Assembly: GCA_002269645.1 (NCBI GenBank)
Contig: NIVC01000438.1
Coordinates: forward strand, 624,272-688,271
Reading direction: 5' to 3'
DNA: 64,000 bases
From: Macrostomum lignano
Taxonomy: Eukaryota
Positions 4,614 to 60,430 of this stretch are shown here, in pieces. The first letter of the stretch is position 1; each line of letters opens with the position of its first letter. The notes under the pieces were generated by a model. It saw nothing but the letters and a program-made list of their open reading frames with translations. It did no database searches and was not told the DNA's origin. Both the position numbers and the translations under genes were made by a program.

Positions 4614-7600
4614 TCATTCAAGCTTTGACTTGGCCAGCAACTTCTTAGCCTCGGAGGTGCAATCAGTGGCCAGCTGATCGTCTGTAGACTTGGCCTCCAT
4701 ACCGCAAACTCTCTCGCCCAGCTTCTTAACTAGCAGGTACAGAGAGACATCTCCGCTGCGGCAGTGCAGAGTGGCTGCGCTGCCCTCCTCCAGATGGACC
4801 ACGTGAGCTAAGCAGGACCAACGCTTCAGGCAATCGTCAAAGCTTAATCCGTCCAATTTAGCAGAGGACTGAGCCAATTTCTGTTGCTGACCAGCCAATA
4901 CCGACTGCAGCTCGTCAATAGACATTGCCGCAGGAACTAAGCGACACAATCGAGGCACTCGGACTTTCATATTCTCTGTAGAGCTAGCGGCGCCAGACCA
5001 GCTGATAGCTAAGCTAGCTCTGAGCTTATTATCCGGTCGGCCAATTAAACTGGCATCGACTCCTGTCGCTATAGCAACGATACAAGCGGCGTTAGCAACA
5101 TCAAAGTCTAGTTTAGACAATCCTTTAGAAGAACGATAGCCTTCAAGGTCAACTGTGGCCGATTTCACAGCGGTCCCGTCAGCTAGAGGCAAAATACGGA
5201 ATGTCAGATCCACCTCACCAGCTTGGGCACTTTTCTGCCAGGCAATGTCAATCCTTGCAGTCAGGGACTCGCCAACTGGCAGCCACAGTCTGGGAGGCTG
5301 GACAGCCGCATCATCATCTAGACCAAGCAGCAATAAATCTTCGCTAGCCTCTGCTGCTTTAGCCTTCTTCTTCTTGCCAGCTTTCTTCTCGCCGCCCTTC
5401 TTCTTCTTCTCTTTCTTCGGCTTCTCCTGCAAGCCGGCATCGTCATCGCCTGCCGCTGCCGATTTCTTCTTTTTCTTAGTAGCCACTTTTCGTTTCGTTG
5501 TGGCGGCGGCCACTTCGGCGGCTGAATTGCCAAACTCAGTCGACGACACGGCACCGCCGCGGCCTCCCATAGCAACCAGATCGTCAATTTTGATATTAGC
5601 CAATTGACGATGCGGGTCATCGGGCGCGAGCCGGGACCCCGGCCCAGCCTCCGCTTCATTGTCGGAGTCTGGAGCGGCATTCTCCGGCATGTCGTAAGCG
5701 GTCGACACCACGTGCGAGCCCGCCAGGTTGTCGTCTTCCTCGTCGTCCTCGTCATCTTCGTCTCGGTTAGTCTCTGGCTTACTACTGCTAGTAGCAGCTG
5801 CTGCTTTCTCTTTCATTAACTGGCGCTTAGTTTTCTTCTTTTTCTTCTTTTTACCATCCTCGACAGCGGAAGCGGCAGCTTTCTCGGCTAGTTTCATTGC
5901 TTTCTGCTTGCTCTGCTCCTGCTTGTGCTGCATCAGGTACTTGTCGGAGGAGGACAGGCCTTCGATACGGAGGGTTGGCATGCCGCTGTCCATGCTGGCT
6001 ACCCTGGGCAGCTGGCTATCTTCATCGTCTAGACCTTCGCCGGGCTTCTCGTACTGGCTCTGCACCCGGCCGAAATGATTGGACTCGTCGCTAGCGAGGC
6101 GTTTAGCGCTGGAGCTCGATTTGAGATAGTTCGGATTGCTCTCCTGTTCGCGAAGCCGAGTCTCCCGCATGGCGGCCAGTTCCGCTTCGCTTGGCTGCAG
6201 GCACGGGAATTAGTAGTATAATTTAAATCAGATAGAAACAATGTTTTTTTGAAAATGCGTTGTTGTGGGGGTCAATTGAGACCATAGAGTGCGTGGGTGG
6301 AGGCTAAAGAGTGTGTGGGTGGAGAGGCCATAGAGTGCGTGGGTGGAGGCTAAAGAGTGTGTGGGTGGAGAGGCCATAGAGTGCGTGGGTGGAGGCTAAA
6401 GAGTGTGTGGGTGGAGAGGCCATAGAGTGCGTGGGTGGAGAGGCCATAGAGTGCGTGGGTGGAGGCCATAGAGTGCGTGGGTGGAGGCCATAGAGTGCGT
6501 GGGTGGAGAGGCCATAGAGTGCGTGGGTGGAAAGACCATAGTGTGTGGGTGGAAAGACCATAGAGTGCGTGGGTGAAAAGACCATAGAGTGTGTGGTGGA
6601 AAGACCCAATTATCAGCTTGGTTGTATTTTTGGGTCTATGATATTTCGGGTCTAATTGAAAGCCAATCTAAATTACCTGATGGTATTCCTTCTGCTCAAA
6701 TCCGCCGCCGCTGGCTCCGCCCCAAGCTACAGTGGGATCGGAACTCGAATAATTCGTAGCGCCCGAAGCTGAAGCCCCAACAGTGGCGGAGACGGCAGCC
6801 TCGGGTTCCTTCTTTCGTCCAGACGACTTTCCCGACTTCCGTTTGACTGGCTCATCGAATTCAGACTTAGGCGGCGCGGGCGGCTCGTTAATCCAGGCGT
6901 CTAAATCCAGTCCCTCTGGCAGGGGCACCTTGCGCTGGGCCTTCGGCGCAACAGGATTCAATTCGCCAGCGAATAGGCCCGATAGCTCCTTGGCCACCCT
7001 GTCGATGACAGCGTCTCCGTCAGCTTCAGCGGTCGATCCGGCGCCGTCTTCAGTGGCGACATCGCCGACATCGAAAATTGCGGCCGTCTTCGAGGCGGCA
7101 GCCTGACGCAATGCTTTAGCGGTGCATTTCAACAGCTGGTGCGCGCACACAGCTCGCTCTTGCACCTCTAAATCCTCAGAGTGCACGAACTGCTCCAATC
7201 GGGTTAACAGCTCTGTTGTCAAGGCGACACGTTCCTCAGCGTCTGATTCGGCTAGCAATAGGTTGGCATACAGTTTCACCTGGTTGTGAACGAATACGGC
7301 CTGGACTTCGCCTGGCAACTGCAATACGTAGGGCAGCGACATCGCCTCCAGGGTGGCCCGACGGGCGTCCTCGGATTCTTCGTCACCGGCTAGGCAGACG
7401 GCGAATTCGCCGCAGATCCAGGCGGCGGCGTACAGCACCTCAACCAGGCCGGCGCTGCCGCCCCCGCCCCCGCTTGTCGCTCCGCCGCCAGAGCCGCTGC
7501 CGCCGCCACCGGCGCCTCCTCCGGCGCTACCGCCGGCGCCGCCGCCCAGCAACAAGGTGTGATTATGCAATAGTAGAGACATTTGACGGGCGGCGAATCG

Positions 7601-9448
7601 GCGAACTTGTTGAACTCGGATGGCAACGTCTAGCAGCTGGTTGGCGATGGCGCGGCCCTGGGCCGGCTTCATGCCTTTGTGGGCGGCCAGCTCCACCAGT
7701 ACGCTGACGTACCATTCGAAATTTGTGATGAAGCGGTAGTCATTCTGGGAGCAGATACCGATGATCTTGCTGAGCAGCTCGTCTCTAGAAATTACAATTT
7801 GGGTTTAGATTTGTACTTGGAAAGGTAGCCTAGCAACTGACAGTTTGAGAAGCTGATGGCCCAACAACTGACATTCTGGGAGGCTGGCCTAGAAACTGAG
7901 GATCTGGGAGGCTGGCCCAACAAATGGGGATCTGGGAGGCTGGCCCAGCAACTGAGGATCTGGGATGCTGGCCGAGCAACTGAGGATCTGGGAGGCTAGC
8001 CCAGCAACTGATGATCTGGGAGGCTGGCGCAGCAAATGAGGATCTGGGAGGCTGGCCCAGCAACTGAGGATCTGGGAGGCTGGCCCAGCAACTGAGGATC
8101 TGAGATGCTGGCCCAGCAACTGAGGATCTGGGAGGCTGGCGCAGCAAATGAGGATCTGGGAGGCTGGCCCAGCAACTGAGGATCTGGGAGGCTGGCCCAG
8201 AGGAGGTAGGAGAGTCACTTTGAAAAGACCTCAATGACAAAAAATAAACAAACAAGTGAGTTTATCTCACCGATAATGTGCTCCTTCAGCTTTTTCCATG
8301 TGCACAATGAGCTTCTTGACAATCTCCATGAGGTTCTTCTTAGACACCATACCGTAGAGAAGGCTCAATGCCCGGAGCCTAATGGACTCATCCTTGTCAT
8401 CTAGGCACTGCATGATGAGCTCTTTGTGAGCTTGCACAGACTTTGGATGAGTTTTCAGTATCTTCGTCATAGCCAGCAGGCCTAGATACTTTAAATTCTG
8501 ATCGCTATCCTCAATAAGGATTTGCAATTTTTGAACGCACAATTGCACGCTAGTAGCGTGATTCTGGAGCCCGGAGCTGATGGAGATGAGCACGGCAATG
8601 ACAGTGTTAATACACTCGTACAACAGCGACATAGCCGATGTACTATGAATCAAATTAGTCAACGGTTCGATCAATTTCTTGCCAAGCCGCGGTTCCAGCG
8701 GAATTAGCGCGCCAAACAGTTTAATAATCTTAATCAGCACCCAATTATTAGTCGACGTTGTCATCAGTTTAAAGAACAGAGGCGCCAGGCTAAGATAGTT
8801 CTGCGGATTCTTGCGAGCCAACTCGCAGATCACATTAACGGCGGCACTCTGCACGCCTGGGTCTGGGTCTTCCAGTTTCTCTTTTAGTCGACCAAATGCC
8901 GGCTTAAGCGAGTCTGGAAATCTCAAGAACACCTTGTACATGAGCAGGACGGCTTTCTTTCTAAGATAAGGCTTAGTTGACGTCATCAATACCATGATGT
9001 CGTTGGCTAAATCGTGAGCAAGATCGCCAGTCATGAAGCAGGACAAGCTGGACAAGGCTACCCCAGCATCGTAGGTGTTAGTAGAGTTGAGATCCTTGCG
9101 CACCAAGTTAGTAGTCAGCATAATTACGTCGGTGCCATCGTGGAAGCTCTGCGAAGCGGCTAAATAGCCAATCCGTTTGAATGTAAACTTTGGCGAGCTC
9201 ATCACTTCCACTATGTTAAAGCCGGCCCAAGAGATGTCATAGCCAAGCATCTGCAGGTACACAAGCTTGTTAATAGCATTGGCTTTCACCACTAAAGATT
9301 CTTGCTTCAGCTCCTGTTTGATCTCTTCGATGCATTCAGAAATGTATTTGCCCTCAGTGTCTTTATGATTGCGAATACCGCGAACCAGATCTTGAAGGTT
9401 CTTGTCCAGGACATGGTCTAGGACACCTTTCACCCTTACTAGAGCCAT
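4614..9448 (-). CDS. AP3D1: AP-3 complex subunit delta-1 (delta-adaptin), 3 exons: 9448-8271, 7784-6677, 6194-4614 (3867 nt, 1288 aa)
   Basis: N-terminus LQDLVRGIRNHKDTEGKYISECIEEIKQELKQ and the adaptin-N trunk are typical of AP3D1. GT-AG introns 8270-7785 and 6676-6195 join in frame to give AHYR|DELLSKIIGICSQNDYRFITNFEWY and Q|PSEAELAAMRETRLREQESNPNYLK. Lys/acid-rich hinge follows. Confidence 0.96.
6283..6607. repeat. 22/24-bp G-rich minisatellite (GAGTGCGTGGGTGGAGAGGCCATA) filling AP3D1 intron 2
   Basis: Direct reading; 24- and 22-bp variants alternate at the left end. Confidence 0.93.
7853..8200. repeat. 28-bp minisatellite (CTGGGAGGCTGGCCCAGCAACTGAGGAT) filling AP3D1 intron 1
   Basis: Direct reading; about 12 imperfect copies. 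Confidence 0.93.
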
Positions 9449-9950: not shown

Positions 9951-12296
9951 CCCTATTGGAATAAGTTGACAAAACGCGGACGATCGTCCATTGCATTTTT
10001 GGATTCTCCTGGTGTCACATCGCCCGACAGTGGTGTCAAGTGATGTGTCGCATCGCGCGACACTGTGGAAACCTGGTGTTGTCATGCGTCGTGTTGCGCG
10101 ACACGACACAACGAGATGCAAAGTGTGGCAAAAAAAAAAGTGTGGCAACTTGGCGGCTGGTGTTGTCATGTGTCGCATTGCGGCCTGGATCTGCAGCCAA
10201 AACCTTGCAAACTGTGTTTTATTGTAATATGTTCACGGTTGTTTCTCGGTATTTAAATGTTTCAAACATGTTCGATAAAAACTAATTCTTGAATTGTTCT
10301 TTTTTATTTTGACAGTAAAATAACTAATACTTCAAATATAATTTTTAGAAAGGTTACTTGTTAGTTACAATGCATGCGCTGTTTTCTAACTGTTGTACCT
10401 TTGTTGTTTTACTGTTTATTGTTTTTGAATTTCATTTCTTTTTCCGCGAAATTGAAAGGAATACTTTTGTCCCTCGCTCCATGGTCTTGGTATTGGGAGT
10501 GAACGGCAGAACAAGAATTGTCAATTGCAATGTGGCTGCTGTGGCGTCCCCCCCCCCTGGTCATTCAGTCAACAGACATAGGTGTTGCGTCGCGCGTCGC
10601 TGCCCCCCAGTCAACAAAATTTGGTGTCGCATTGCACTTTTGAGGGCACAATTTTGGCACCCGTGTTGCGCGTCCGCAGGTTTTTGAAACTTATTCCAAT
10701 AGGGGTCCAAGGTTGTGACTGCAATGCTGCTGTGGACAGCAAACACTAAAACCCATGGATCAAAGAAGCCGCTTCCTAAAAGCTGTAGCCCAGTGCATTT
10801 CTAGTGAGTACAACCCACATCCCAATAAACTCACACCAAAAATCCACAAATTATCACTTTCATATCTCTTAATTAAATTTCATACGCTGAATTTTTGTAG
10901 ACATCATTCACAGCAACAAGAGACTAAAGTGTCAGTTGCCTAAAAACTTATCTAAGCGAAATAGGCCATTCTCTTTTATTGGCGAGATTCTTAAAAGGAT
11001 GACAAAGAAAGCGCAATCAACCAGTAGAGCAGAGTAGGCAAAAATAAGGCTCCTTTTTGTTTTCCTATAAAACTGAATAAGCTCAATAAAAGTGCAAAAA
11101 CTTTAGAAAAAATATTGATTGCTCTATCACTTTGCCACCAACTGAAAATGGAAGAGCCCTAAGTAAAACTAGGCAATGTTATTAATGTATAGATAGTCAT
11201 TAAGTTGCGTTGAATGCTTTGATTGAGGACTCGCTAGATTCAAAGAACCGGAGAAGTTCTGGGCTGCATTGCCATGTGAGGAATTTCTATGCCTACTGCA
11301 TAGAAACGCCGACAGTGAGCGGATCATCAAATGGATTGCTAACAATGTCACAAAGCAGCAAAATGAGCTAGTGGATTATATACTAGACTATTTTGTCCAT
11401 CAAGTCCTAGCTAAAGGCCTTCAAAAAAGAGCCATCCAATTTTTGCATGGACTGCTTGCTGTTGGTCATCAGCTTTGATACCCATGCAATTGCCGAAGCA
11501 TGTGCTAAGGCAAAGGAGTGTGAAGAAATAATGAACCACCTTCAGAAAAAGCTAACCATGCAGCGTCAGAAGGCCAATGAGTGGAAAAAAAGACAAAAAG
11601 CAAGAGGACAAAGCTGCTGAACAAAAGGTTATCAACAAAATGAGAAAACATCTCTGGCATAAGAGATACTCCAAAAGGCAGATCAATGAGATCAACAAAC
11701 GAGAAGTGAATTACTCGACGATAATACCAGTAAAAACTTAATGTCTATATTAAATTGAGTTAAGACATAATTTCATTTGAGTTAAGACATTACTTGAGAT
11801 ATGATTTGAGACTGAATGATTTGAAATTGGCGTAGTGAAGTGGGAAGTCTGGAATTTGGAAATACATAAAATCGTGTCAGTGTCACAGGGTTGTTGTCTG
11901 AGTTAATAATAAAATATCACTGGCTTCAAAAAAAGTTTTTAAAAGGTTTTTGTGACTAGAAATGTAAATTTTTTGTTTTCTGTTTGTTAATTATTTTACA
12001 TGAAGAAATTTTTTGTTCAAAAAAGCCTAATGTTGCTGCTCAAAAAAATTTGTCCTGCTCAATTATTTTCAAAATGCTCTGTGGTCACACTGCTCTTAAC
12101 TACCACTGTTTACCTATTTGCCCCTCAATATACTAAAACTGACATGTTGTCTATATGTATGTGGGTATGTGAGTATGTAACAAAATTATTCCTAGGCTTT
12201 TTTTATATAAAGTGTATCATGCTTGACACACATAGTAGGCAAAGTGTATAATGCTTATTACCCATTAGCAGACTTTGAGGACTTATTCCAATAGGG
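9951..12296. mobile_element. Putative non-autonomous DNA transposon with 16-bp TIR CCCTATTGGAATAAGT and an internal extra terminus at 10689-10704
   Basis: CCCTATTGGAATAAGT at 9951-9966; exact reverse complement at 10689-10704 and 12281-12296. A stop-interrupted coding-like stretch lies at about 11270-11750. Confidence 0.55.
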
Positions 12297-13594: not shown

Positions 13595-13751
13595 AGTATT
13601 GTGCTTGAGGGTGTTTATGAGCTCGTGTTAGAATAGTTTAGATTAGTGCGGCTAGGGATCTGTTTGGAAGAGGGATTGCTTCCGATTTGTTAGTGTCGTT
13701 TTTACGTCATTGTGTTTCTGTTGTTGTTGAGCATACGATTGCGCTGTCGTG

Positions 13752-14858
13752 ATGGGAGACGAAGGTGTGAATAGACTGGTGGAGTTAATGTCGGCGTCAG
13801 TTTGTCGGGCGTTGCAGCAGGACATCAACGTGGCACAGAATGTACAGCGGCCAGCGAAGCCCCCGAAGTACTGCATTGGAGATAATTTCAGGCTATGGTT
13901 GCAGAGGTTCAATGCCTATTGTGAAGCATCGCAGATAGTGGAAGACAATCGCCGGCCTCATCTCTTCAGCTTCTTGGATCTAAATACGGCTTTCGCGGCA
14001 GTGGAGAATATTCAGCTGGAGGAGGGTGCCACGTATGATGATTTCACCGATGCACTCCTAGAAAGGTTCCAGCAGCAACGCACGGCCGAGGATTTCAAGC
14101 TGGAGCTGGAGTCGCGAGTCCAAAAAGAGGGCGAGACGTATGAGACTTATGCAGATGTGCTGTTAGAGTTAGCAAGGAACGGGTACCCAGATGAAGACAT
14201 GCCAGTCGGAATCATCAACAGCTTTGCCAGAGACCACTTCAAGAAGGGCATCCGAGCACCGGAACATGTCAAAGAGTACGTTATGCTGCAGCAACCCGCC
14301 ACCCTTACGGATGTGATTCGTTGCGTGCAACGAAAGGAGGCCGCCGGTCGAGCCACCAAGCCGACAGGTTCAGAACAAGCTTACCGGAAAATTGCTTCGA
14401 CCATTGGTGTGGTGAATACCGGAGGCACCAGTTCAGACGGATTAGAAGAACTTCAACAGCGGATTCAAGACCTGGAAGGGCAGTTGAAGCGGCTGAATCA
14501 GGCACCGCCTCCTCAACAGTCTGCTGCACCCTTGTCTTCTGGGTCTGCGCGTTCGCGCGGCCCGGGGCCTGGGTTACAAGGTGGCAGAGGGGCCTGCGTG
14601 TATGGCGCGACCCCTAGTCAGCTGGCAGGGCAGCAGCAGAGGCAGGCCGGTGCTTGCTTTCAGTGTGGAAACATTGGCCACCTAGCGCGCGAGTGCCCAA
14701 GTCGCTCCGGAATGATGCAGCAACCGCAGTCAAACCCAGCGGCGAGGACTGGTGGTCCAAGGCGTTGCTACGCGTGCAACCAGCCGGGTCATCTGGCCAA
14801 GAATTGTTGGTCGGGAAACTTCAACAGAGGTCCTGGGAAGGGGAGCCAGGGCCTCTAA
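13752..14858 (+). CDS. gag: Gag (capsid-like region plus two CCHC zinc knuckles)
   Basis: Intact ORF, ATG at 13752; CFQCGNIGHLAREC and CYACNQPGHLAKNC. Confidence 0.93.
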   Translation: MGDEGVNRLVELMSASVCRALQQDINVAQNVQRPAKPPKYCIGDNFRLWLQRFNAYCEASQIVEDNRRPHLFSFLDLNTAFAAVENIQLEEGATYDDFTDALLERFQQQRTAEDFKLELESRVQKEGETYETYADVLLELARNGYPDEDMPVGIINSFARDHFKKGIRAPEHVKEYVMLQQPATLTDVIRCVQRKEAAGRATKPTGSEQAYRKIASTIGVVNTGGTSSDGLEELQQRIQDLEGQLKRLNQAPPPQQSAAPLSSGSARSRGPGPGLQGGRGACVYGATPSQLAGQQQRQAGACFQCGNIGHLARECPSRSGMMQQPQSNPAARTGGPRRCYACNQPGHLAKNCWSGNFNRGPGKGSQGL

Positions 14859-14879
14859 TCCAGTCAGCCAAACCTCCCC
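14813..14879 (+). promoter_or_regulatory. -1 programmed ribosomal frameshift signal (G GGA AAC plus predicted H-type pseudoknot)
   Basis: Heptamer 14813-14819 in the gag frame. 6-nt spacer. Stem 14826-14836/14846-14856. Loop GGGGAG (14840-14845) is complementary to CTCCCC (14874-14879). pol is in the -1 frame. Confidence 0.8.
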
Positions 14880-17800
14880 CGTCCAGTCAGCAGCCGGTTG
14901 ACACACCAAGTCTGATGATGCATCCTACCAGTGTGTATGTGTCCTGTCAAATCGGTGGTCAGGTGGTCTCTGCATGTGTCGACTCGGGCGCTGCTGTGAC
15001 GATCATAAATGAAGCTTTGCTTCAGAGAGTGAGAAAGACTTGGACAAAATCGCCACCGAGTATTCAGCCTCATAAATCAACAATCCATGCTGCCAACAGC
15101 AGCCCAATCAACATCAGTGCGATCTGCTAACTTCCCTTAATGATAGGCGAGAGCGAATTGAGTATGACAGCTCTAGTATCCTCGTCGGTTTCCTACGAGC
15201 TGTTAATGGGAGCCGACTTTCTGCTTAAGCACAACTGCCGCATCAATTTTCAAGATGGTGTACTTCACCTAGCAGATGCCAGCGTTCCGCTACGTTTTCA
15301 CCAACGGCCTGCAACTGTGTGTCACATTCTAGCGTCGGAGCGAATTGTGGTTCCGCCTGGAGCAGAGAAGATAGCATCTGGTCGATTCTTAATGAAGGGT
15401 GGAAGAGGACGATACACGAGAAGCCCAGGAGTAATTGAGGAAAGTCAAGACCGGAAGCGCGCAGGTTCCGCGGTGTTAGCGAGGTCCTTAGTGATGCCCA
15501 CGGAAGACGCTCGAGTCCCCGTACGGCTGGCAAACTTCTCGGAGGTTCCTGTCACCATCCGCAAGGGTGAGACAGTTGCGTGGTACCATCCGCTCGATCC
15601 GCTGCAGCCCATCGCGCTAGCAACGTTGAGTGAAGCCAAGGATGCAGCTCCGACACTGGAAAAGCCTTGCCAAGAAGAGAGTGAGGTGGCCGAGGAGCTC
15701 CTAGCAGGTCTGAAGAATTGGGGAAGTTGTGGTTTGTCGGCAGAGCAAGAGGCGAAGTTCAGAGCGCTAATCCAGTGCAACAGAGACGTATTTGCAACCG
15801 AACTTGCCGAGGCCACGGTAACGAATGTCAGTGAGCACCGAATTGACACGGGGACGGCAAGACCTATCAAACAGGCTCCACGACGACTGCCGCCACATCT
15901 TAGAGCAGAAGTTGACGAGCAACTTGATGAGCTTCTGGCGCAAGGAAAAATCGAAGAGGCAATGTCCCCATGGAGCTCGCCAGTGGTCTGTGTGCAAAAG
16001 AAAGACAATTTGCTTCGAATGTGCGTGGACTATCGTCGGGTCAACAATGTGACCGTTAAGGACGCCATTCCACTACCTTGCATCGATGAAGCCCTAGAAG
16101 CGCTACATGGAACAGCCGTGTACAGTTCCCTAGATCTGCAATCTGGCTACCATCAAGTTCCGGTAGCTGCAGAAGACCGAGACAAGACTGCATTTGCTGT
16201 GCCGCACCGCGGACAATTCCAATGGCTAGTGATGCCATTTGGTGTCACCAACGGCCCAGCAATGTTCAGCCGCATCATGCAAACTGTGCTGCACCCATTG
16301 GCCTAGAAGATATGCCTCGTGTATCTGGACGACATTTTGGTTTTTTCTAACACCGTAGAAGATCATCTGGCCAGGTTGAGTGAAATTTTTCAGCGGCTGA
16401 GAAGTGCAAATCTAAAGCTGAATCCGAAGAAGTGCGAGCTGCTTAGTTCCGAAGTGAGCTTTCTGGGTCATCGAGTCTCGGCGGACGGCATCGGAACTGA
16501 CCCAGAGAAGGTCCGAGCAATTTGCGAGTGGCCGACACCATGCACTGTCAAGGATGTGCAAGCGTTTCTCAGCACTGTTGGCTACTACAGGCGTTTTATT
16601 CAAGATTTTTCGCACACAGCTGAACCATTGATGGAACTGACAAGATCTACATCACCGTTCCAGTGGGGATCGGCCCAAGAAGAAGCCTTCCAGCGGCTGA
16701 AAGAGGCGCTGACCGGAGAACAGGTCATGGCGTACCCGAACTTTGCTCCAGATGCACCGCCGTTCATCTTGGATACAGATGGCAGTTTGTCAGTGGGAAT
16801 CGGAGGCGTCCTATCTCAGCTGCAACCGGACGGGTCGGAGAAAGTCATTGCGTACGGATCACGCACCCTGTCATCTGCAGAGCGGAATTACTGCATGACC
16901 CGCGTTGAGCTCCTCGCTGTAGTCACCTTTATTCGCCAATTCAAGTACTTTCTGCTCGGGAAGCACTTCATTCTTCGAACCGACCATAGCAGTCTGCGCT
17001 GGCTGCATTCATTCAAGAATGTTGAAGGTCAAGCTGCGAGATGGCTGGAGCAGCTAGCCTGCTTTGACTACACGATCATACATCGAGCAGGCCGGGACCA
17101 TGGGAATGCCGACGGGTTATCACGTAGGCCGAGAAGCCACTTTGGAGCAACCACGTGCCTGTCCTGCAAGGAGCAGCCTGAGGTCAGTGCAGTAACATTC
17201 GAGTCGGGACTCCAACAACGCGTCCATGAAGCGCAGCTCAAACATCCTGAACTACGTCTGCTAAGACAGGCAGTGCAGACAGGGCGACTAGAGTCGCTTG
17301 GAACTGGGCACCCAGGACCAGGAACACCCTACTGGAAGGCGCTGATGGCCAGAAAAGATGAACTGTGCATGGTCAATGACCTGCTGTGCATCAGGACAGA
17401 GAAGAATTTCAAAGTTGTTCTGACGGCAGAAACGACGAATTTGGTCATCTTAGAATTACACAGTGGAGCCAGTGGAGCGCACAGCAGATTTTTCAAGACG
17501 AAGAAAAAAGTGACCTCGCGATTTTGGTTTCCGGGCCTTGGCAGACTGGTAGAAGAGTTCATTCGATGCTGTGTAACCTGCAGAAAATCAAAGACGAAGC
17601 AGCGAGGCCGAGCACCCCTCGAGCCGATTCAAACTGGTGCTCCATTTGAACGTGTCATGGTTGACATTGTCGGACCGCTTCCACAAACAAGGAAAGGAAA
17701 CATGTACATCCTGACAATTCAAGATGCTTTCACCAAATGGCTGGATGCGTACCTGCTTCGAAACCAGAAGGCTGCAAGCTGTGCAAAGGTGTTTGTCGAA

Positions 17801-18733
17801 TGCTGGATCAGTCAACACGGATGTCCGCAGTTCCTGCACTCGGATCAAGGCCAAAATTTCGAGTCAAGATTAACTACGGAACTGCGCTCGTTGCTAGGCA
17901 TCAAGAAGACAAGAACAACACCGTACCACCCAATGGGGAACGGTCAAGTGGAAAGCTTTAATCGTACGCTTGGCACCAGCTTGAGAAGCCTGATGGTCAA
18001 AAATGGAGCAGCGCAGTCAAGTTGGGAAGAATTTATACCGGCGGTGCTAATGGCGTATCGGTCCAGTGTACATCGAGGAACCGGCTACACACCGCACTAC
18101 CTGGTGTACGGTGAGGAGATGCGACTGCCTGTTGACCTGATGAACAAGCCGCCTCAAGTGCAGCCGAGTGAAACAACGGAATATGTTGCTGAACTACATC
18201 GCAAGATGCAAGCAGCTGGCGACACCGTGCGGACCAACCTGTCAATGTATCAGAGACAGCAAAAGGATCAGTACGACACGGGAGCTCGTGGTTCGGGATT
18301 CAACGAAGGAGATCTGGTCTACGTGTATCAGCCTTGTCTGGAGACCGGCGAAGCAAAGAAGTTCCATGTGTACTGGACTGGACCGGTGAAAGTGTTCAAG
18401 CGAGAAAGTGCAACTCGATACAGGGTAGGGCACCCGACGAACAACCGGAAGAGGAAAACCGTGCACTTTAACAACTTGCACCTTTACCGTCGCGCTGAAC
18501 AGAGTGAGCAAGATGGGCAACGTGTACCGGTCCCTGAGCAACGGGAATCCGATGAGCACAACGAGGAGGATGATGATGAAGATGGCGAGAGTGAGTGGGT
18601 GCAGCTGCCTCAACCCGAAGCAGTAGATTTCGGAGTCCCTGGCAGTCCGGGTAGGCCACCCACGCCAGAGCGTCGTTACCCGGTTAGAAACCAGGTCCCT
18701 ATGCAGTTTTTTGGTAATCCCGTGCATCACTGA
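14813..18733 (+). pseudogene. pol: Pol (aspartic protease, RT, RNase H, integrase) with two in-frame stops (TAA 15128-15130, TAG 16304-16306)
   Basis: ORFs 14654-15130, 15140-16306 and 16319-18733 share one frame. PR: VDSGA and LLMGADFL. RT: CVDYRRVN, LDLQSGYHQV, MPFGV, YLDD. RH: ILDTDGS, ELLAVV, TDH, ADGLSR. IN: HHCC, VDIVGP, HSDQG, NGQVE. Confidence 0.95.
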
Positions 18734-18834
18734 CCAGTCATGGAGCGAACGCACAGGATGAAGGAGGCAGAAAAGTGCATGAATTTAAATAGTCGTCTAC
18801 CTTCTAGCAAGTCAATTGCCATTTCATTTTTAGT

Positions 18835-19686
18835 ATGTACTACAAAGTCCTGGGTGTCGCATCTGATGCGACCATGCAGCAGGTTAAGAAGGCTTACTAC
18901 TAGCGCATACGTCATGCACATCCAGACAAGGTAGGGCCAGGCGCTCGGCGGCAGGCACAAGAAATAAATGAAGCGTATCGAGTATTGAGTGATCCGTTTC
19001 TGCGAATCGTGTACGAACAGTTTGGTCCCGAGGGTGCGCAGGCGCCGAAAATGTTTCTGTCACGACTGAGACTGCTAGCTGGGATGGCAATACCGACTAA
19101 GTACTTTGAGCAGGTGGAAATATCGTCAGAATCTGAGGATGACACCGAGGATGAGCAGGAAAGTCGACTGCAGTTGATCGGGAAGCCGAGTGTGGGAAGC
19201 GAAGATGAGCCAGTGAATACAGCGGTCCGCAACAAATTGAAGCGCGCTTGTTTACGTGGGAACGCGTCGGAAATTGCGAGGTTGATGGCGGAAATCCGGC
19301 AGTTATATTCGGCGCGTCAGGCAGTAGCTGAGGTCAAGAGAGCGTTACTGAATGGGTTAAAGGATCTAGCGACGAAAAAGATCGGCCCCTCGAAGATTGT
19401 CATGAGCGTCAACGAGTACAAATCGACATCAAGAGCAGTGTGGGAAGCTGCTCAGTCGCTAGAGTTCCGCTGTGTAGGAGTGTTAGTAGCGTCAGTGCGT
19501 TGCTTTAGGCCCTTCCTGGTCAATAAGGTTTTTAGGCGGGCACCAATGGCACCCGGGACGGGGGAACCCAACCGTTCCAGCCCTGCTGCGGACGCGGATG
19601 TCCTGGTGCTGGATGCCGAGGAAGAGGACCTGGATGACCTGGGCGAGGAAGCGACGAGCGGCGGCATGAACTCGTTGAAACTGTGA
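18835..19686 (+). pseudogene. Extra ORF3 of the LTR element: DnaJ/Hsp40 J-domain protein (283 codons, one internal TAG at 18901-18903)
   Basis: Same frame as track ORF 18985-19686. Reads MYYKVLGVASDATMQQVKKAYY*RIRHAHPDKVGPGARRQAQEINEAYRVLSDPFLRIVYEQFGPEG, with HPD at 18919-18927, then an acidic linker, a helical/basic region and an acidic tail. Confidence 0.88.
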
Positions 19687-41748: not shown

Positions 41749-41951
41749 GATGGCTGAGATGCCAGTGATCAAGGTGGATGGCTGAGATGCCAGTGATCAA
41801 GGTGGAATGCTGAGATGCCAGTGATCAAGTCATGCTGAGATGCCAGTGATCAAGTCATGCTGAGATGCCAGTGATCAAGTCATGCTGAGATGCCAGTGAT
41901 CAAAGTGGAATGCTGAGATGCCAGTGATCAAGGTGGAATGCTGAGATGCCA
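41749..41951. repeat. 25-29-bp minisatellite (GCTGAGATGCCAGTGATCAAG...) about 8 copies
   Basis: Direct reading. Confidence 0.9.
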
Positions 41952-46616: not shown

Positions 46617-47993
46617 TCAAACCTGCGCTTCAGTTTCTTTATCGCTATCAACTTCATCCACTCTGTTCTCCAGCTTTGATTGACTGGCCCGCTGTTCGTC
46701 AGCCTCCTCGTTGTCACGCTGGCTGTGATAGCTGCTCAGCAGGGGGATCTCGTTACCAGCCACGGATATGCGCGATCGTGACGATGGCCGTCTCTTGATG
46801 CCCAGGCCGCCATTGATGAGCACGTCAATTTGCAGCTGCTCAGACTGCTGCTGTTGCTCCTGCTGCTGTTCGTCATCACGAACTGGCGTCCGTCCATTTC
46901 GATGGCTGGGATGTTCATTCGCCTCTTTCAGTCGCTGTCTGATTGTTGCCGCTATTTGCTGATTCTGCTGCTGAATCCGAGTCGTATTGTTGCCTGCCCG
47001 TTGTCTGCAGCGACAGAACAGCGACAGGTAGAAGTTACACACCGGATCGCACGAACGAATGTACAGAAACGGATTGACGACGCTGTTGCACAGCAGGAGC
47101 CACCAGCACAGCTGGAAAATGTGAAATAGCGGCTGCGTTGGCGAGAACAGAGCCTTGTCAACCAGCGTACGGATGACTACCATCAGCATGCACGGCAACC
47201 ACATGGTCGTGTAGATCGAGTCGAAGACAATCAGCCACCGGCCCGCTCGTCGGCTCGCCTTGCCAGCCAAACGAAGCATTCGGTCTTGGCCAGCAAACTG
47301 GGCGATGCCTCCCTGCAGAGTGTAAAACAGCTGCTTTCGTTGGCGCATTCTGGTGTACACTAGGCAGCTGCTGATGACCGTGGCAGAGAACGGCAGAAAG
47401 AACTGGATTAGCACCCCGCACAGCTGCAAGGCCAGGCTCTCTTCATACTGCACCGAGCATCCGTGATCTTCACAGCTTTCCGTGGAATTTCCGCCAACTT
47501 CGGGCCAGAGAAGAATTAGCGGCGTGTGAAAGTTGGCCAGCACAAAGCAGCAGGCTAAAATACCCGATATTTTACGGCGGGTCTGCATCTTCTGGTAGCG
47601 CAGGGGTTCCATCACTAGCACGGAGCGATCGTAGCTCAGAATGGCTACGCAGTACGATGACATGCTGCACAGGATGTAGTCTGCTATTAGGTAGGGCTTG
47701 CACAAGGCTCGAGACACTGGCCATTTGAAGTTGTTTAGCGTAAAAACTCCGTACAGGGGCACGTCCACCAGACATACTAACATGTCAATCGCAGCCATAA
47801 TGGTAATGATAAAGAAGTAAGGATTGGTAGCTCGGCCAAATTTGACTAGGCCGAAAATCACAGCCGTATTACCAAGAAGTCCGAGCGACACCATGAGAGT
47901 CATGGCTACACCCGAGATGGTCACGACAACTCTCGATGACAATATTGGCGAGCCTTCATCGATGCAGCTCAAATTTGCGTCAACGCTTTGCAT
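46617..47993 (-). CDS. Intronless class A GPCR, aminergic-like (histamine H3/H4- or muscarinic-like), 458 aa
   Basis: Seven hydrophobic segments: GN in TM1, AAxD in TM2, C3.25 and D3.32, SYDRS (DRY variant), FFLP, MWLP, WLLLCNSVVNPFLY (NPxxY). Confidence 0.92.
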   Translation of the reverse strand: MQSVDANLSCIDEGSPILSSRVVVTISGVAMTLMVSLGLLGNTAVIFGLVKFGRATNPYFFIITIMAAIDMLVCLVDVPLYGVFTLNNFKWPVSRALCKPYLIADYILCSMSSYCVAILSYDRSVLVMEPLRYQKMQTRRKISGILACCFVLANFHTPLILLWPEVGGNSTESCEDHGCSVQYEESLALQLCGVLIQFFLPFSATVISSCLVYTRMRQRKQLFYTLQGGIAQFAGQDRMLRLAGKASRRAGRWLIVFDSIYTTMWLPCMLMVVIRTLVDKALFSPTQPLFHIFQLCWWLLLCNSVVNPFLYIRSCDPVCNFYLSLFCRCRQRAGNNTTRIQQQNQQIAATIRQRLKEANEHPSHRNGRTPVRDDEQQQEQQQQSEQLQIDVLINGGLGIKRRPSSRSRISVAGNEIPLLSSYHSQRDNEEADEQRASQSKLENRVDEVDSDKETEAQV

Positions 47994-51626: not shown

Positions 51627-54518
51627 ATGTTGCTATTAAAATTGGTCCGCGTAGACATTCGAGAAGTCTTTGATCAGGGATTTCGTTTGGTCATAATTTT
51701 AACATTGTTTGTGAATTTCGTCTTGTTGCTGGCAATGCACATCTTCATGGTTCGGCCGCTGTACATGCTGTGCGGCCACGAGAACTTCAGTATTATCTCC
51801 AGATGGATGTTCATCAAGAACAGACCGAGCAACGTGTCCAACGCTTACTGGGAAATCAAGGCGTCCTGCTACATTTCTAATGTAAGTGCATGATTTCACC
51901 GAGTTTGCGGCAGTATATTAAGTTTGAAGTTTAGTTTAACCTCAACCAGAAAAACACCTTAGCTTCCTTTATTTCTTAACTAACCGATATGCTAAGAGTC
52001 GTAACTATTGGGTACGAGAGTATATGCTTTGAAGTTTCTTAGATTGTTTAATAAGCGTATTTTACTTATAATCCTACTTTTAGTAGAGCATCGAATAAAA
52101 GTTTAGCATACTTGTACTAGGTATTTTGGTTGTATTCGTATATTTGAATTTATAATTTTCTCAGCTTTTATGAATGGTATTTTGTGGCGGTCCAGCCTGT
52201 ATACCAGGTATAGGTCTTTAACATATCTACTGCAACTCCCCTGCAATACTAAACAGTAACTCAGACTGAAGGATGACGTACTCGATTTTCTTAGAAATGA
52301 GCTGGAGACCGATTAGGAAAGCGCATCTTTCGTATCGCTGAGTATTTTTACGACCGATTTCGTCCATTGCGTAACTCGATTTGGTGTTCTCTAGAGAGCA
52401 TATTAAACTCACTAGTGATACGACAAATATACTGTATGCGTTTTTGCAAAGGTCTCCAGCTCATTTCATCGGTAAATTGATACCGAATTTGAAATCTGAG
52501 CCGCTAAAAAACCGTAGAAGGGGCCAAAGTAGTTTGGTGGTAGCTTGTGACTCTTGTGCCACGACCAGTGGTTCAGTTCCGTTATTTATTTGGTTCTTTT
52601 CACGAAAATTGTCCTGAGGCCGAAGGCTGTCGAGTCAGCGGAATGGACAAAATTTCCTGAACGCTAGTTTCGGTGCCGCCGGAAGCGTTTCGCTGGGTTG
52701 CCAGCAGCTCTAGTGATAATTAATCTACTATTAAACCCCGCAGCAATAGATTTGGACTATTTAAATTTTGGATTTTTAATGAATAAACTCACCAATAAGT
52801 TTAATTTCGCTGTAAGATTCTATTTCTTATTAAAATAAGAAAGCTTGAAGCGCAAGCATCGAGTGTCAAAGGTTATTGAACTACGGATAGTCACGCCCAA
52901 CCAACTTGCAGGTCATGGACATCACTATCAGTGTATTTGTCCTGATGTTCACAATCTGTGCGGTAGTTGAAGCTTTCCTAACAATCGGCACACAGCGTCA
53001 GTTGCGTCGTCTGGATCAAAACGCCGCCGATGTTGCCGCTCTGCTAGACGATGGTGGAGATCGTCGGAGAGCCGACGCCGATGAGGAGGAGAACGGCCGG
53101 GAGGTCAGGAAGACCAGCACCCCTGATCCCGGCGCCATCGTCACCAGCTCTGGCGGGGCGCCAACCGGACACGCCATTGTGCGGCAGCGGATTCTCCGAA
53201 AGTATTCCTTCCGTGTGTGTGCGTGTGTATTAACCTACGGCTCGGGTCCCAGCCCGCCGAGGAAGGTCGACTCCAGGAAGGTGGACGTCTCAATTGGGTT
53301 GTTCCAAAGGTCACTAGGGCAGAGCGGCGTCGGATAGACAGGGCAGTCGAAAAGATGGACCACCGTTTGGGGCTCCAGACCGCAATCAGGACAGACCGCG
53401 GCGACGCCTGGTTTGATTCTCGACTGAAAATCCTGGAGAAGCGGGCAGAAACCGGAGCGGAGCTGCGCCAGTATGCACCGCATGCGGCGGGGGAGGCAAG
53501 TTTCGGAGCGATGGATCGCTGGCCGTTGTGTTTGAATAACACGGTTCTGTGGCAGGCTGTCCAGCATGGCCTGTACTGCCTGCGTATGCTGGGCCCGCCT
53601 GGCGCGATCCCAGGCAGCAGCGTCAAGGACGTCCGGGGCCGGAACCGGCGTCCAATCAGCATTAAAGTGTTCAGCCGTGAAGATGGAGGCTTTCATGAGT
53701 CTGCGCGGCGGCGGAAGGCCAGAAAGGTGGTGACAAGGGAGTTCAGGGCGTCTAGCGCGAAGCTTGAACTGGAGCGAAAGAAGTCGGTTGTGCTGGCGGA
53801 CGGTAAGCAACTGGACTTCACTATGAAGATCCGCTTCAGAGGTAAGGGCAGTGCAGCCGGTGATGCCGCGAATCGCTGCATTCTGGACCGATTGCAGCCG
53901 CGTCCAGGACGAGTTGGAGATGATAGGGCCCCAGACCGGAGCAGCATAGTCGAGCAGGCTTCTGCCTAACGCTTTGAAGGTGGTCAGCAAAAGTTCCTTG
54001 CAGCAGCCCCAGGAGGAGCCGGCGAGACAGCGTAGCAGGCAGTTCCTTTTCCGGGTTTTTTCCGCAAGAGTGGTAACGCTTCCAATGCAAACCGCTTTCG
54101 TCCGGCTTGCCGGCAAGTGGGAGCGACCATGTTGTGCCCTTGGGTGCACTTGGCAAATGGTTTGCAACTCCCTACACCAGGGTATTCCTTCCGTAGACTC
54201 TTCTTCCGAATGTCAATCTCTGTTGTGACAGCTTTCTTTGCATCCGCCAACTTCCTCAGCATTCTGGTGGTTGCTTTGATGTTTAGCATCGTAGAGTCCA
54301 CGCTAAATCAGCCGCTTCGTCAAGCCTACAAGCCGACTTTATTCACTCTGAAGTGGCAGATCATTATGTACTTTTTCCTCTCATTCTTTTTCTGTGGATT
54401 TCTCTGGTCAATGCAGGGCATCTACAGAGGTCAGGTGGATGGCATCTTGGAGCGTGCTCAGCGGATGGAGCAATTCCGGAAGATGAACCCAGACGAAGCA
54501 AAATATCTCATCTCTTAG
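51627..54518 (+). CDS. Uncharacterised 4-TM membrane protein; exon 1 51627-51881, exon 2 52912-54518 interrupted by a LINE (293 aa without the insert)
   Basis: AAT|GTAAGT donor and TTGCAG|GTC acceptor, both phase 0. Removing 53215-54194 joins RKYSFR to RLFFRMS in frame. Four hydrophobic helices. May be a disrupted allele or rescued by splicing. Confidence 0.75.
53215..54181 (-). mobile_element. 5'-truncated non-LTR retrotransposon (ORF2 C-terminus with CCHC finger), 13-bp TSD GTATTCCTTCCGT
   Basis: RSLLDYAAPVW...LQSVQNAAIRGITG; LAQLRSGFCPLL; CPDCGLEPQTVVHLFDC. Short (CA)-rich tail after the stop. TSD at 53202-53214 and 54182-54194. Confidence 0.93.
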
Positions 54519-57065: not shown

Positions 57066-60038
57066 ACTAGCATGGAACGGATGGATAATAAATGGTACAA
57101 AAATATGAGCGTAACAGATTGAATTTTGGGCTCTTTGAGTCTACGTAATCTGCAAAGCCGTGATTGTCTATTTAAAAACAGATCAACGTTGATGAAAAAT
57201 CGTCAAATATTTCTGCACCATATCCTACAAATTTATATTACCTTCGAAAAGAGCTTTATATGAGTAGCACTTATTTAGTATGCAGATCTTTCTAGGCATC
57301 AGTTTAAAATGCTACTATTCTTTATATTTCTGCCGCTCGTGTTGTCACACTGCGATCGAGACAATGCAGTCTTGTTTAAGCAGGCGATTAGCCTACTTTT
57401 TTTATCAATATTATCAGATCAGATAAAAGAGTAACTTTCAATATTTCCTTACCTGTTATATCACTGAAATTATCTATAACTTTGACATATTTGTTTTAAT
57501 CAACCTTTTAGCTGACACACTGAATGCTGCATAAAATTTGTTTCGTCTCTACCCTCGTAGTTTAGTCAACTACTTAGCAGTAATACTTTTATTACCCGGT
57601 AAAACTGTAGTAATAAGCAGTGTGACCCAGAGATTTCCAAGATAAATACTCGTATATTCAAAAATACAAGGTTGAATCAAATTCTATCTAGAACATTCTG
57701 GCTGTTCCAAGGCAAAATATAGTTACTAATAGTTTGTAAGCTTGGACTCAATATTTTATGAGTCAATATCAGTTCCATAGCAATCTCGAGAACTACCGCT
57801 TTTACGTCTTATTAATTTAGCACCGTTATAATGCTTCAATTGGATTTTAGAATGCCAATAGTAAAAAACTGCTTTGCCCATTAACGCAAGAGATAATATT
57901 CATCTATCAATACTATGAATAATTGAAGCAGATAGCTTAGATAAATATAGATATACTCAGTATTGCTGGGAGAGTTTTAAAATAAACTAAGATTACCTGT
58001 TGCAGAAAGCGCGACCAACCGAACCAAACCGAATCTACAAGGATATCAGCACGGAAAAGTTTTTCTCGTTAAATCAGATTTCGTTTACTTTTAAGAAAAG
58101 TATGAATAAATTTACTGACAAAAATATTTAATTAAAAATCTAAGACAGAGAAAAGTTTGTTTTATTTAAAACTTTGATTTCAATATAATTAATAGCTTCC
58201 ATGGATTTGGATAAAAATGGCTACAAATTCTATTTTAGCTACTGCTTTTTCTCCTAATGTATACTCAGCAACATACAAAAGTTGCCACTCTAGCGAGAGA
58301 GCTGAGGGGTAGCTTTAATTCGTCCAGCCTTCGCACAGCGCTACCCCACTTCATTCCCCAACTCAAGTCTGCCTCGGCGTAGCTATAAGTTGTGCTGCTC
58401 GCAAAGATTGAGAGACTTTGCATGCACTCTCAAAAGTGGCGACCACAGATGGGATTTTCTGTGATGGCGACTTTTCGATGTATCTGAGTAATATTGATTG
58501 TATTCCTTTCAGTAAGAAAACTTTCTGGAAGTTCTCGCAAAGTAAATTACCTAGGAAAGTAAGGATTACTTAGGTAATTACATGGGCTTTTTTCAACTGG
58601 TTGAGCTGTTTTATTACCCAATTAACGTGTTGTAACGATGTTGATATTTAGTTGTTCGTAAATATTGTAATATGGTATTATTAATGTCTCCTTAGTATTG
58701 TATTAATTTATCTACTATTCATTAGCGAATTTTAAAGTTATTCAATACGTACGCTTAAAATTTGTTTTACGGTATCTTTCATGGAAATATTGTTTAAATT
58801 ATTTAAATATTTATTATTAAAAAGTAATATCTAAATTTTTTTATTTATTATTTATTATTTATTATTTATTATTATTTATTATTTATTGAAATAATTATTT
58901 AAAAGACTGTTAAATCGCGATTTTGCGCTAATCGGTCTCTTGTCTCGTGCTTTTCGGTTGGTCCGCCGCGTTGTGCCCGTTTGCAGTTGTTTAACATCAA
59001 AAAATTAACGGCGATAAAACTAAAAGTGTATCCTATCTCTTCAAATATATAGGATAAGACAAGTCAACTCGATTCGGCCGTAAGATTGTCTGATAATTTA
59101 TTATTGTGCATAGCCGTCAGTACCGAACTCAGAAGGGTCTCGTCACAGTGTCAAGCGTAATTCAGTTGGATCCTTCGTCCATTTATCTGCCGTGATACCC
59201 CCCCCCCGGTCCTTCACGATTTATGTGTTTCGTGCAGAGATAATGACGTCATGCTTTTTGTGTGAAACTAGATGACCCAAAGTTTTGAGCCAAGACTCGG
59301 ATGAGTCTTCATACTAATTAGTGCCAGATTAAACAAATGCATTGCTCTGCCAAGTAGAAAGCAGTGTGAAATCCTTCCTGCCGTGCAATCCACTGTTTGC
59401 TTTCTCTTATTTGCAAAAATGAAAGCAGAATCTGAACAAAGCAACGCCAGGCGTTGCACTCGCAATTCTGCAGCTGCTGTTGGTGGTGCTTCTGCAGGCA
59501 GCTCAACCGGTGAACTTGATCCCACCAGTCCCCGATGGCCAGCAGAGCGGAACTACTGAAACGGGCTGCAGCATCGAACAATTCGAGCCTCAGAGCGCCA
59601 TCTGGATGAACCAGTCAGCTGATCCAATTAGCCTATGGAAATCTGGGAACCGAACAAAACAACTTTGAGCCCTTCTTCTGACAAATCTTTGCTCCCCAAG
59701 AAAAATTTGGCCACCAACACAACAAAGAAGCAGCCTACTGAAAGCAATCGGATGCACCCCATCGTATATGCACGCCACTATAGTTCTGCAGGTTTTAGAG
59801 CTGGCCACCAAGGCATTCATTGAGCTGAGCAAATTCAACCAAGCCAAAGGCGGACACTGCTGACCAAAATCAGCTTTTTTCTTCAATGATTAAATTTTGT
59901 TGACGAATGATCGATTTTTTTAGATGACGACTGCGTTGCAGGTAAAATTGGCCACTGAGAAAGTTCACTAGCCTTCCTTGTGAGTCGTTTTGGTAATCAA
60001 TAATTTTTCTTCAGGGCGCCAAAATATAGCGCTTACGG

Positions 60039-60430
60039 CGCTAAAATGAGTTCCTGCGGCGCTAAATGAGTGTCTGAGGCGCTAAAATGAGTGCCTGCGG
60101 CGCTAAAATGAGTGCCTGCGGCGCTAAAATGAGTGCCTGCGGCGCTAAAAGAGTGCCTGCGGCGCTAAAATGAGTGCCTGCAGCGCTAAAATGAGTGCCT
60201 GCGGCGCTAAAATGAGTGCCTGCTGCGCTAAAATGAGTGCCTGCTGCGCTAAATGAGTGCCTGCGGCGCTAAAATGAGTGCCTGCTGCGCTAAAATGAGT
60301 GCCTGCTGCGCTAAAATTAGTGCCTGCGGAGCTAAAATGAGTGCCTGCGGCGCTAAAATGAGTGCCTGTGGCGCTAAAATGAGTGCCTGCGGCGCCAAAA
60401 TGAGTGCCTGCGGCGCCAAAATGAGTGCCA
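60039..60430. repeat. 21-bp minisatellite (GCTAAAATGAGTGCCTGCGGC)n, about 19 copies
   Basis: Direct reading. Confidence 0.95.

Follow-up and report, generated by a model that had tools for sequence, protein, structure and literature searches.

A recent LINE insertion splits exon 2 of one of three homeologous copies of Mlig026281 in Macrostomum lignano and probably knocks that copy out

In one of three homeologous copies of the Macrostomum lignano gene Mlig026281, exon 2 is split by an antisense, 5'-truncated non-LTR retrotransposon (LINE) fragment of 967 bp. Most probably, a neopolyploid genome rich in TEs has here recently lost one of its redundant homeologs to an ordinary LINE knock-out, with the splicing outcome and the loss of function predicted from sequence. 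Briefly, target-primed reverse transcription would recently have placed a dead-on-arrival, 5'-truncated element antisense into exon 2 and would thereby have broken the reading frame in this copy alone. Most transcripts are predicted to retain about two thirds of the insert, on its 5' side, and with it a premature stop, while a 339-394-nt piece between donors 53803/53842 and acceptors 54180/54196 may be removed. The insertion-bearing copy would then most likely be a null allele, at an early step of homeolog loss, and would be buffered by two intact loci encoding the identical protein.

The window, the whole 64-kb stretch of DNA analysed, is the end of contig NIVC01000438.1, and all positions below refer to it (slashes mark splice boundaries). 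The product of Mlig026281 is a small membrane protein of 293 aa with four hydrophobic segments. The coding part of exon 1 (51627-51881, plus strand; 85 codons in the ORF list, MLLLK...CYISN) corresponds to residues 1-85 of P0001 and encodes hydrophobic segment 1. Intron 1 (51882-52911, 1030 nt, plus strand; donor AAT/GTAAGT, acceptor TTGCAG/GTC), whose junction is set by the annotated protein ...ISN/VMDIT, is the sole genuine intron of the gene. The part of exon 2 upstream of the insertion, including the left copy of the target-site duplication (TSD), lies at 52912-53214 on the plus strand and translates into P0001 with no differences. The downstream part (54195-54518, plus strand) encodes hydrophobic segments 3 and 4 and ends with the stop TAG at 54516-54518. 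The insertion falls at aa 183-186, about 8 residues ahead of segment 3 and between segments 2 and 3, where the initial annotation had placed it relative to TM2 and TM3. Mlig026281 is a Macrostomum-restricted gene. Pfam returned no matches for the host protein in its 207-aa and 293-aa forms, even at E<=10, and the UniRef label "Ion_trans domain-containing" was not reproduced. Among 1.84 billion representatives, the search for distant homologs gave one M. lignano paralog (P0008) and P0009, a repeat protein that was rejected as a false positive. No mention of the gene was found in the literature and supplements.

The insert occupies 53215-54181 on the minus strand and is flanked by two copies of the 13-bp sequence GTATTCCTTCCGT, at 53202-53214 and 54182-54194. 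The two copies match at 13 of 13 positions and cannot be extended (A/G before, G/A after), and the unspliced host/insert junctions read CCTTCCGTGTGTGTGCGTG and CTACACCAGGGTATTCC. The minus strand of the insert carries an uninterrupted ORF of 314 codons (54179-53238) ending in TAG at 53237-53235. After this stop the LINE 3' end extends for 20 nt with the tail ACACACGCACACAC at 53228-53215, and the LINE sense strand terminates ...TAG GTTAATACACACGCACACAC, adjoining the TSD. RVT_1-containing proteins, all of them unnamed metagenome proteins, match the ORF at 39-40% identity (E 1e-44 to 5e-56) over their part just C-terminal of the RT domain, including the terminal CxxC...H...C motif. A C-terminal CCHC motif is common to several of the named LINE clades (CR1, Jockey, I, L2 and others). 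In the alignment with P0002, the ORF covers residues 145-419, directly beyond the RVT_1 match of that protein at 12-134; the LINE 5' end begins within the ORF, past the RT domain. Pfam gave no match to the insert ORF even at E<=10, the RT catalytic domain being missing from the truncated copy, and the PDB sequence search returned a single spurious match (E = 0.02). A repeat search over 53100-54300 detected no LTRs or TIRs; apart from the TSD, all repeats in it were short and attributable to chance. The insert thus combines an RT-ORF lineage, a TSD with an empty site, and a tail with 5' truncation. Collectively, it is a real retrotransposition product, far beyond chance, and the initial annotation was correct in describing an antisense truncated LINE with a perfect 13-bp TSD. 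The insertion is young, as shown by the unbroken ORF of 314 codons and the identical TSD copies. No second copy was detected at the DNA or protein level in about 108 kb, comprising the window and about 22 kb at each of the two homeologous loci.

The paralogues in which the initial annotation proposed to look for the empty site do contain it. At NIVC01000862.1 (L003) and NIVC01002355.1 (L001) the exact sequence ...AAGTATTCCTTCCGTAGACTC... is present and the target occurs once, and on either side of the insertion collinearity with the homeologs extends beyond 7 kb. The homeologs diverge by 2.0-2.2% in intron 1 and by 0.4-0.8% in the CDS, where the three copies differ at only 4-5 synonymous sites. 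Non-synonymous changes are absent from the CDS of the insertion-bearing copy, an observation that a very recent insertion and continued function would explain equally well. This copy also carries private variants, namely A at 54215 (ATGTCAATCTC; G in the homeologs, ATGTCGATCTC) and, upstream of the insertion, A at 52992 and T at 53034. Two other accounts of the site were rejected. The GT run is not a pre-existing target microsatellite, as the GT/AC run is missing from the empty sites; precise excision from both empty loci would require two exact deletions or gene conversion, and LINEs do not excise. In DV1, three paralogous subgenomes make up the genome; they diverge by about 2.2% in SNPs, 93% of read pairs multi-map, and most of the divergence between subgenomes comes from large insertions (PMC10733133). 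As the two other loci encode the identical 293-aa protein, the insertion-bearing copy need not work.

All three loci carry gene calls for the identical 293-aa product (PAA58599.1, PAA75780.1 and PAA83013.1), and one of these calls spans exactly 51627-54518 of the window. At this locus the intact product can be obtained only by skipping 980 nt between non-canonical ends: the skip can be placed in 14 equivalent ways, and GT-AG, GC-AG or AT-AC ends occur in none of them. The annotation pipeline placed de novo transcripts by BLAT (minId 0.8, globalNearBest 0.01) and RNA-seq reads by STAR with 1000 multi-mappings allowed (PMC5730564). Because the gap is non-canonical and the pipeline multi-maps, we infer that the intact model at the insertion locus is an annotation artefact, produced by transcripts or reads of the intact copies that were cross-mapped across the gap. 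The deposited model is less likely to be proof of splicing, since no canonical intron yields its product and near-best BLAT hits survive in the pipeline at every paralogous locus. This is a concrete annotation error, in which GenBank assigns an intact protein to a locus with a LINE-split exon, and such cross-mapped models will make intact homeologs and "non-canonical introns" seem more numerous in M. lignano than they are.

The splice signals at and in the insert were scored with a generic metazoan PWM, not one trained on M. lignano. The donor at 53213 (TCC/GTGTGT, 53213-53218, plus strand), which begins with the final two bases of the TSD and continues into the LINE tail, scores 1.5 bits on this matrix, a value matched or exceeded by 24% of the GT dinucleotides in the window; it is at background level, in line with its earlier description as non-optimal. 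The three verified donors in the Mlig026281 gene family are GTAAGT, GTGAGT and GTGAGC. The acceptor ending at 54180 (CAACTCCCTACACCAG/G, 54165-54180, plus strand) is provided by the truncated LINE 5' end and reaches 6.4 bits, among the top 4.4% of window AG sites. A stronger acceptor, made mostly of the right TSD, lies 16 nt downstream (GGTATTCCTTCCGTAG/A, 54181-54196, plus strand; 8.9 bits, top 0.8%), and its use (CCTTCCGTAG/A) is out of frame with donor 53213. Furthermore, the insert contains two near-consensus internal donors on the plus strand at 53800-53847, ACG/GTAAGC (G at 53803, 9.0 bits) and GAG/GTAAGG (G at 53842, 10.4 bits), which are nearer to the acceptors. Their use would leave about 600 nt of the insert, including the first in-frame stop, the TAG at 53335-53337 (plus strand). 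This stop, which ends the reading frame whenever the insert is retained, is reached 41 codons into the insert, and the truncated product has hydrophobic segments 1-2 only; an exact-protein look-up of this read-through ORF gave no record. The predicted junctions are ...CTTCAGAG/GGTATTCC or /ACTCTTC for donor 53842 and ...GGCGGACG/GGTATTCC or /ACTCTTC for donor 53803. The ends of the insert offer 16 GT x AG pairs, of which six keep the frame, where about one third is expected by chance, and the existence of an in-frame GT...AG pair is itself not beyond chance. These signals argue for a knock-out, with the reservations that the splicing is predicted and not observed, that weak GT-repeat donors are sometimes used, and that one canonical GT...AG pair is indeed present in frame.

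Partial rescue of the insertion-bearing copy by another cryptic in-frame splice is unlikely, though it fares better than the other alternatives. Joining 53217 to 54196 (TTCCGTGT/ACTCTTCTTCC) would remove exactly 980 nt and leave a single R->V change, joining 53202 to 54196 (CTCCGAAA/ACTCTTCTTCC) would delete YSFRR, and the pairs 53223 to 54196 and 53219 or 53225 to 54180 would add 2 to 8 aa. Every one of these pairs is GT-AG, in frame and stop-free, and for three of them the acceptor is 54196, the strongest in the vicinity. However, all their donors are weak (0.0-1.7 bits) and face the same competition from the internal donors 53803 and 53842.

The initial annotation had gone further and proposed that the 968 nt from 53213 to 54180 could be spliced out as a newborn LINE-derived GT-AG intron, leaving a possibly functional gene whose protein has a YSFR duplication before segment 3. 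The arithmetic of this proposal is correct: the GT and the AG are both present, and their joining (TTCC/GGTATTCC, i.e. TTCCTTCC/GGTATTCCTTCCGTAGACTCTTCTTCCGAATGTCAATC or, at greater length, TTCCTTCC/GGTATTCCTTCCGTAGAC) keeps the frame and adds 12 nt encoding YSFR; five other nearby pairs are in frame as well. The decent acceptor, the similar size of intron 1, and the otherwise intact CDS also speak for it, and non-LTR-derived introners exist, at about 5% of classified families (PMC12130899). Nevertheless, the background-level donor competes with far stronger donors within the insert and the acceptor with the stronger one at 54196, and in-frame pairs are no more frequent than chance predicts. 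Inspection of 54130-54180 revealed no clear branch-point motif, as had been remarked before. Homolog P0008 keeps a constant length at the insertion site, and the 5.8-billion-cluster collection, where the P0001 cluster has a single member, holds no protein with the YSFR duplication. The two intact copies do away with any selective need. Splicing-out is thus disfavoured as the main outcome, because of the weak donor, the strong internal donors, the stronger acceptor at 54196, the chance-rate frame and the redundant copies. Of the earlier proposal, the LINE, the TSD and the split exon stand, and the functional newborn intron is a formal possibility that the sequence argues against. The birth of an intron from this LINE, in which the spliceosome would pair a weak GT of the TSD or the (GT)n tail with an AG from the right TSD or the truncated 5' end, with a functional protein carrying YSFR or, via 53217/54196, the R->V change, is given very little probability. 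If true, an animal retrotransposon would have been intronised in one datable event, and two homeologs of the same genome would still show the intron-less ancestral state.

Still less probable is that the acceptors at 54180 and 54196 serve spliced-leader trans-splicing and yield a 5'-truncated mRNA for the C-terminal half, starting from a Met at about 54210 and containing segments 3-4. Spliced leaders are added to 38.8% of M. lignano genes (PMC5730564), and the 54196 acceptor ranks in the top 0.8% with an ATG 14 nt downstream; against this purely inferential reading, cis donors are present upstream, and the intact copies contain the same TSD sequence without an annotated trans-splice site. Finally, although a TE-rich genome with three near-identical subgenomes is hard to assemble, the least credible reading is that the insertion is not fixed in the germline, the reference having captured a somatic or rare event or having been misassembled, as the perfect TSD, the tail at the 3' junction and the 5' truncation are the signature of retrotransposition and not of a mis-join, and the flanks are collinear with the homeologs.

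Exonic LINE null alleles arise through target-primed reverse transcription, for example as disease-causing L1 insertions in human exons. The knock-out proposed here resembles them in the 5' truncation, the TSD of variable length (13 bp here), the 3' tail, and the hit in a CDS that disrupts the frame. In contrast, the tail of the M. lignano insert is a short AC-rich repeat and not poly(A), and the gene belongs to a neopolyploid flatworm that has two further, intact copies of it, so that the phenotypic cost is probably nil. TE insertions spliced via cryptic sites are exemplified by the maize Ds/dSpm alleles and the 412 insertion in Drosophila vermilion. They share the concept of the newborn intron, namely imprecise removal through element-end or TSD sites that slightly alters the protein, but they rest on cDNA and residual gene function, whereas the M. 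lignano insert shows sequence potential. Introners are transposon-derived spliceosomal introns, by definition families of many similar copies, demonstrably annotated or spliced, with good carried or co-opted splice signals (PMC9860276; PMC12130899; review PMC11282704). Like them, the M. lignano element lies in a coding exon with a TSD, draws its GT and AG partly from the TSD and the element ends, and has in-frame potential. Unlike them, it is a single copy, with no family member in the window, L001 or L003 (about 108 kb searched), has a background-level donor and stronger internal competitors, and is known from its sequence. As in the homeolog fractionation of M. lignano (PMC10733133), one of three subgenome copies bears a private disruptive TE insertion; the Mlig026281 insertion looks like a typical instance of that process and shows no substantive difference from it.

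In conclusion, if copy-specific RNA showed in-frame removal of the insert, this locus would be a rare datable animal intron gain with built-in empty-site controls. As a probable knock-out, the insertion illustrates in a routine way the erosion of redundant gene copies by TEs that follows genome duplication.

A non-LTR retrotransposon, truncated at its 5' end and antisense to the gene, has genuinely inserted into exon 2 of the host gene (Mlig026281), leaving a 967-bp insert flanked by a 13-bp target-site duplication (TSD). Copies of GTATTCCTTCCGT were identified at both 53202-53214 and 54182-54194, with no extension possible on either side, and between them, on the minus strand of the 967-bp stretch (53215-54181), runs a frame of 314 codons with no interruption, closing with TAG at 53237-53235. 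Only 20 nt follow this stop, ending in ACACACGCACACAC at the left TSD copy. Metagenome-derived proteins with an N-terminal Pfam RVT_1 domain match the ORF at 39-40% identity (E down to 5.5e-56). In one of these homologs, P0002, the ORF matches residues 145-419, directly beyond the reverse transcriptase (RT) match (12-134), and the alignment takes in the C-terminal LAQLRSG...CPxC...HLFxCP motif. A Pfam search of the insert ORF found no RT domain, so this truncated copy cannot move autonomously, and a repeat search of the insert found no LTRs or terminal inverted repeats. Decisive for insertion are the empty sites at two homeologous loci, L001 (NIVC01002355.1) and L003 (NIVC01000862.1), where the left- and right-flank BLAST segments overlap by exactly 13 bp and the sequence reads ...CGAAAGTATTCCTTCCGTAGACTC..., with one target copy and no GT run. 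The initial annotation had described an antisense LINE with a perfect 13-bp TSD in exon 2; the RVT_1-protein homology and the empty sites, which it had suggested seeking in paralogues, bear this out, and all its coordinates are correct. A young age of the insertion is suggested by the perfect TSD together with the intact ORF. The gene strand is also open for 250 codons at 53217-53969, antisense to the LINE ORF; this frame most likely does not represent a gene but reflects the GC-rich, codon-biased sequence of the opposite strand.

When the product reconstructed for the empty site was searched against protein sequences, one cluster came back, the 293-aa BOX15_Mlig026281 (P0001), at 100% identity over the full query. 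Exact-sequence look-up placed P0001 at three loci of GCA_002269645.1 (Mlig_3_7), and window 41627-64000 matches one of them, L002 (NIVC01000438.1:665898-688271), at 100% identity, which makes the window the final 64 kb of this contig of the free-living flatworm M. lignano. The gene consists here of the exon 1 CDS (51627-51881), intron 1 (51882-52911, AAT/GTAAGT ... TTGCAG/GTC) and exon 2 (52912-54518, insert included). No Pfam domain was found in the host protein, which has four hydrophobic segments at about residues 19-42, 88-111, 194-219 and 240-259. The insertion point corresponds to residues 183-186, about 8 residues ahead of segment 3, and lies between segments 2 and 3 as originally proposed. 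The family is restricted to M. lignano in the collections searched, because P0008 was the sole relative recovered when 1.84 billion representatives were scanned in full with HMMER; it is a 280-aa M. lignano paralog on the same contig as L001, 33-37% identical across the full length and aligned without gaps at the insertion site. The P0008 gene (L004, NIVC01002355.1:119575-127805) has a second, phase-0 intron at about 4336-5078 (TAC/GTGAGC ... TTCCAG/CTG, after ...RSFIY), composed almost wholly of tandem repeat units of roughly 58 nt containing GTGAGC/GTGAGT. This intron is missing from the window gene, in each of its three copies, at the homologous ...QIIMY/FFLSFF (about window 54369), and represents a presence/absence difference inside the family, which could reflect either gain or loss.

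The three homeologous CDS encode an identical protein. The window-copy CDS differs from the other two at 4 and 5 positions, all synonymous (0.4-0.8%), whereas intron 1 diverges by 2.0-2.2% among the homeologs, so purifying selection has acted on the host gene since the copies split. Three copies at about 2% divergence are as published for the M. lignano genome: the DV1 inbred line has three paralogous subgenomes with an SNP rate of 2.2% (1.1% in CDS), and 93% of its read pairs multi-map (PMC10733133). L001 intron 1 contains roughly 600 bp of additional sequence (about 10500-11100, equivalent to window 52126) that is missing from the window and L003, another copy-specific indel. Tandem-repeat arrays at about 60015-60429 (period about 21 nt) and about 41753-41951, visible as staggered BLAST self-hits, are conserved in L001 and L003. 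The window also contains, on the minus strand, a multi-exon AP-3 complex delta subunit gene (4614-9448; Adaptin_N and AP3D1 domains) and a single-exon rhodopsin-family GPCR ORF (46617-47993; 458 aa, 7tm_1 E = 1e-31). On the plus strand, the coding region of a Ty3/gypsy-like LTR retrotransposon (13749-19686; zf-CCHC gag, RVT_1, RNase H, integrase) is possibly a young copy, given its long open frames.

Should the insert be retained, the frame enters it for 41 codons and stops at 53335, and the read-through product would have hydrophobic segments 1 and 2 only. The initial annotation had proposed that 53213-54180 could be removed as a newborn intron, and the arithmetic is sound: the frame is kept and YSFR is added. 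Every GT and AG in the window was scored against a position weight matrix for metazoans in general; its frequencies and the resulting values are approximate. The donor at 53213 (TCC/GTGTGT), already described as non-optimal, scores 1.5 bits, a value matched or exceeded by 24% of window GTs; the intron 1 donor at 51882 (AAT/GTAAGT) reaches 8.9 bits (0.3%), and the three verified introns of the host family begin with GTAAGT, GTGAGT and GTGAGC. Two donors of the antisense LINE, 53803 (ACG/GTAAGC, 9.0 bits, 0.3%) and 53842 (GAG/GTAAGG, 10.4 bits, 0.1%), lie 339-394 nt from acceptors 54180/54196, and their use would keep about 600 nt of the insert, stop codon included. The proposed acceptor at 54180 (CACCAG/G) scores 6.4 bits, a level reached by 4.4% of window AGs, and the acceptor at 54196 (CCTTCCGTAG/A), formed mostly by the right TSD, scores 8.9 bits (0.8%) and is out of frame with donor 53213. 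The left insert end offers eight GTs, because the element tail is (GT)n on the gene strand, and the right end two AGs. Six of the 16 pairs are in frame, among them 53217 to 54196 (exactly 980 nt, a single R-to-V change) and 53202 to 54196 (YSFRR lost); one third is expected by chance, and an in-frame GT...AG pair is therefore evidence of nothing. Judged by these signals, in-frame removal is not favoured.

Exonic LINE insertions making null alleles are classical, and single insertions are removed via cryptic splice sites in maize Ds/dSpm and the Drosophila vermilion 412 allele. There is ample documentation of introns derived from TEs (introners; PMC12130899, PMC9860276, PMC11282704), about 82% of them being TIR DNA transposons, with non-LTR retrotransposons making up about 5% of classified families (PMC12130899). 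The newborn-intron idea is legitimate, with precedent; however, introners are defined by demonstrated splicing out of mRNA, by competent splice signals and by recurrence across a family, and on these points the insert falls short or stays a candidate.

The deposited gene call at the window locus spans exactly 51627-54518 and gives the same 293-aa protein as the two empty loci, which needs a skip of exactly 980 nt. This gap can be placed in 14 equivalent ways within the repeat, none of them with GT-AG, GC-AG or AT-AC ends. For Mlig_3_7, a de novo transcriptome was mapped by BLAT (minId 0.8, minCover 0.95) with every hit that came within 1% of the top one kept, RNA-seq was mapped by STAR with 1000 multi-mappings allowed, and the results were merged (PMC5730564). 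An empty-copy transcript, with about 4 exonic differences from the window locus, would therefore be retained at this position, the LINE becoming an alignment gap, and we infer that the intact model is a cross-mapping artefact, not splicing evidence. Template switching by reverse transcriptase between both TSD copies could in principle yield the 980-nt gap, but is unneeded to account for the model. The P0001 90% cluster holds a single member sequence, found only on the three genome contigs; neither the +YSFR nor the truncated variant is in the protein collection searched, exact-sequence look-up returned no record of the read-through ORF, and the identifier Mlig026281 appears in no paper or supplement among the literature searched.

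Rescue of the window copy by in-frame splicing is very improbable; if true, it would make the locus a noteworthy instance of a retrotransposon becoming an intron in an animal. Most likely, one of three redundant homeologs in this TE-rich neopolyploid genome has been inactivated by the LINE insertion, which a cross-mapped gene model conceals in GenBank. Such a model with a non-canonical gap is probably a systematic result of multi-mapping in Mlig_3_7, which may affect other homeologs.
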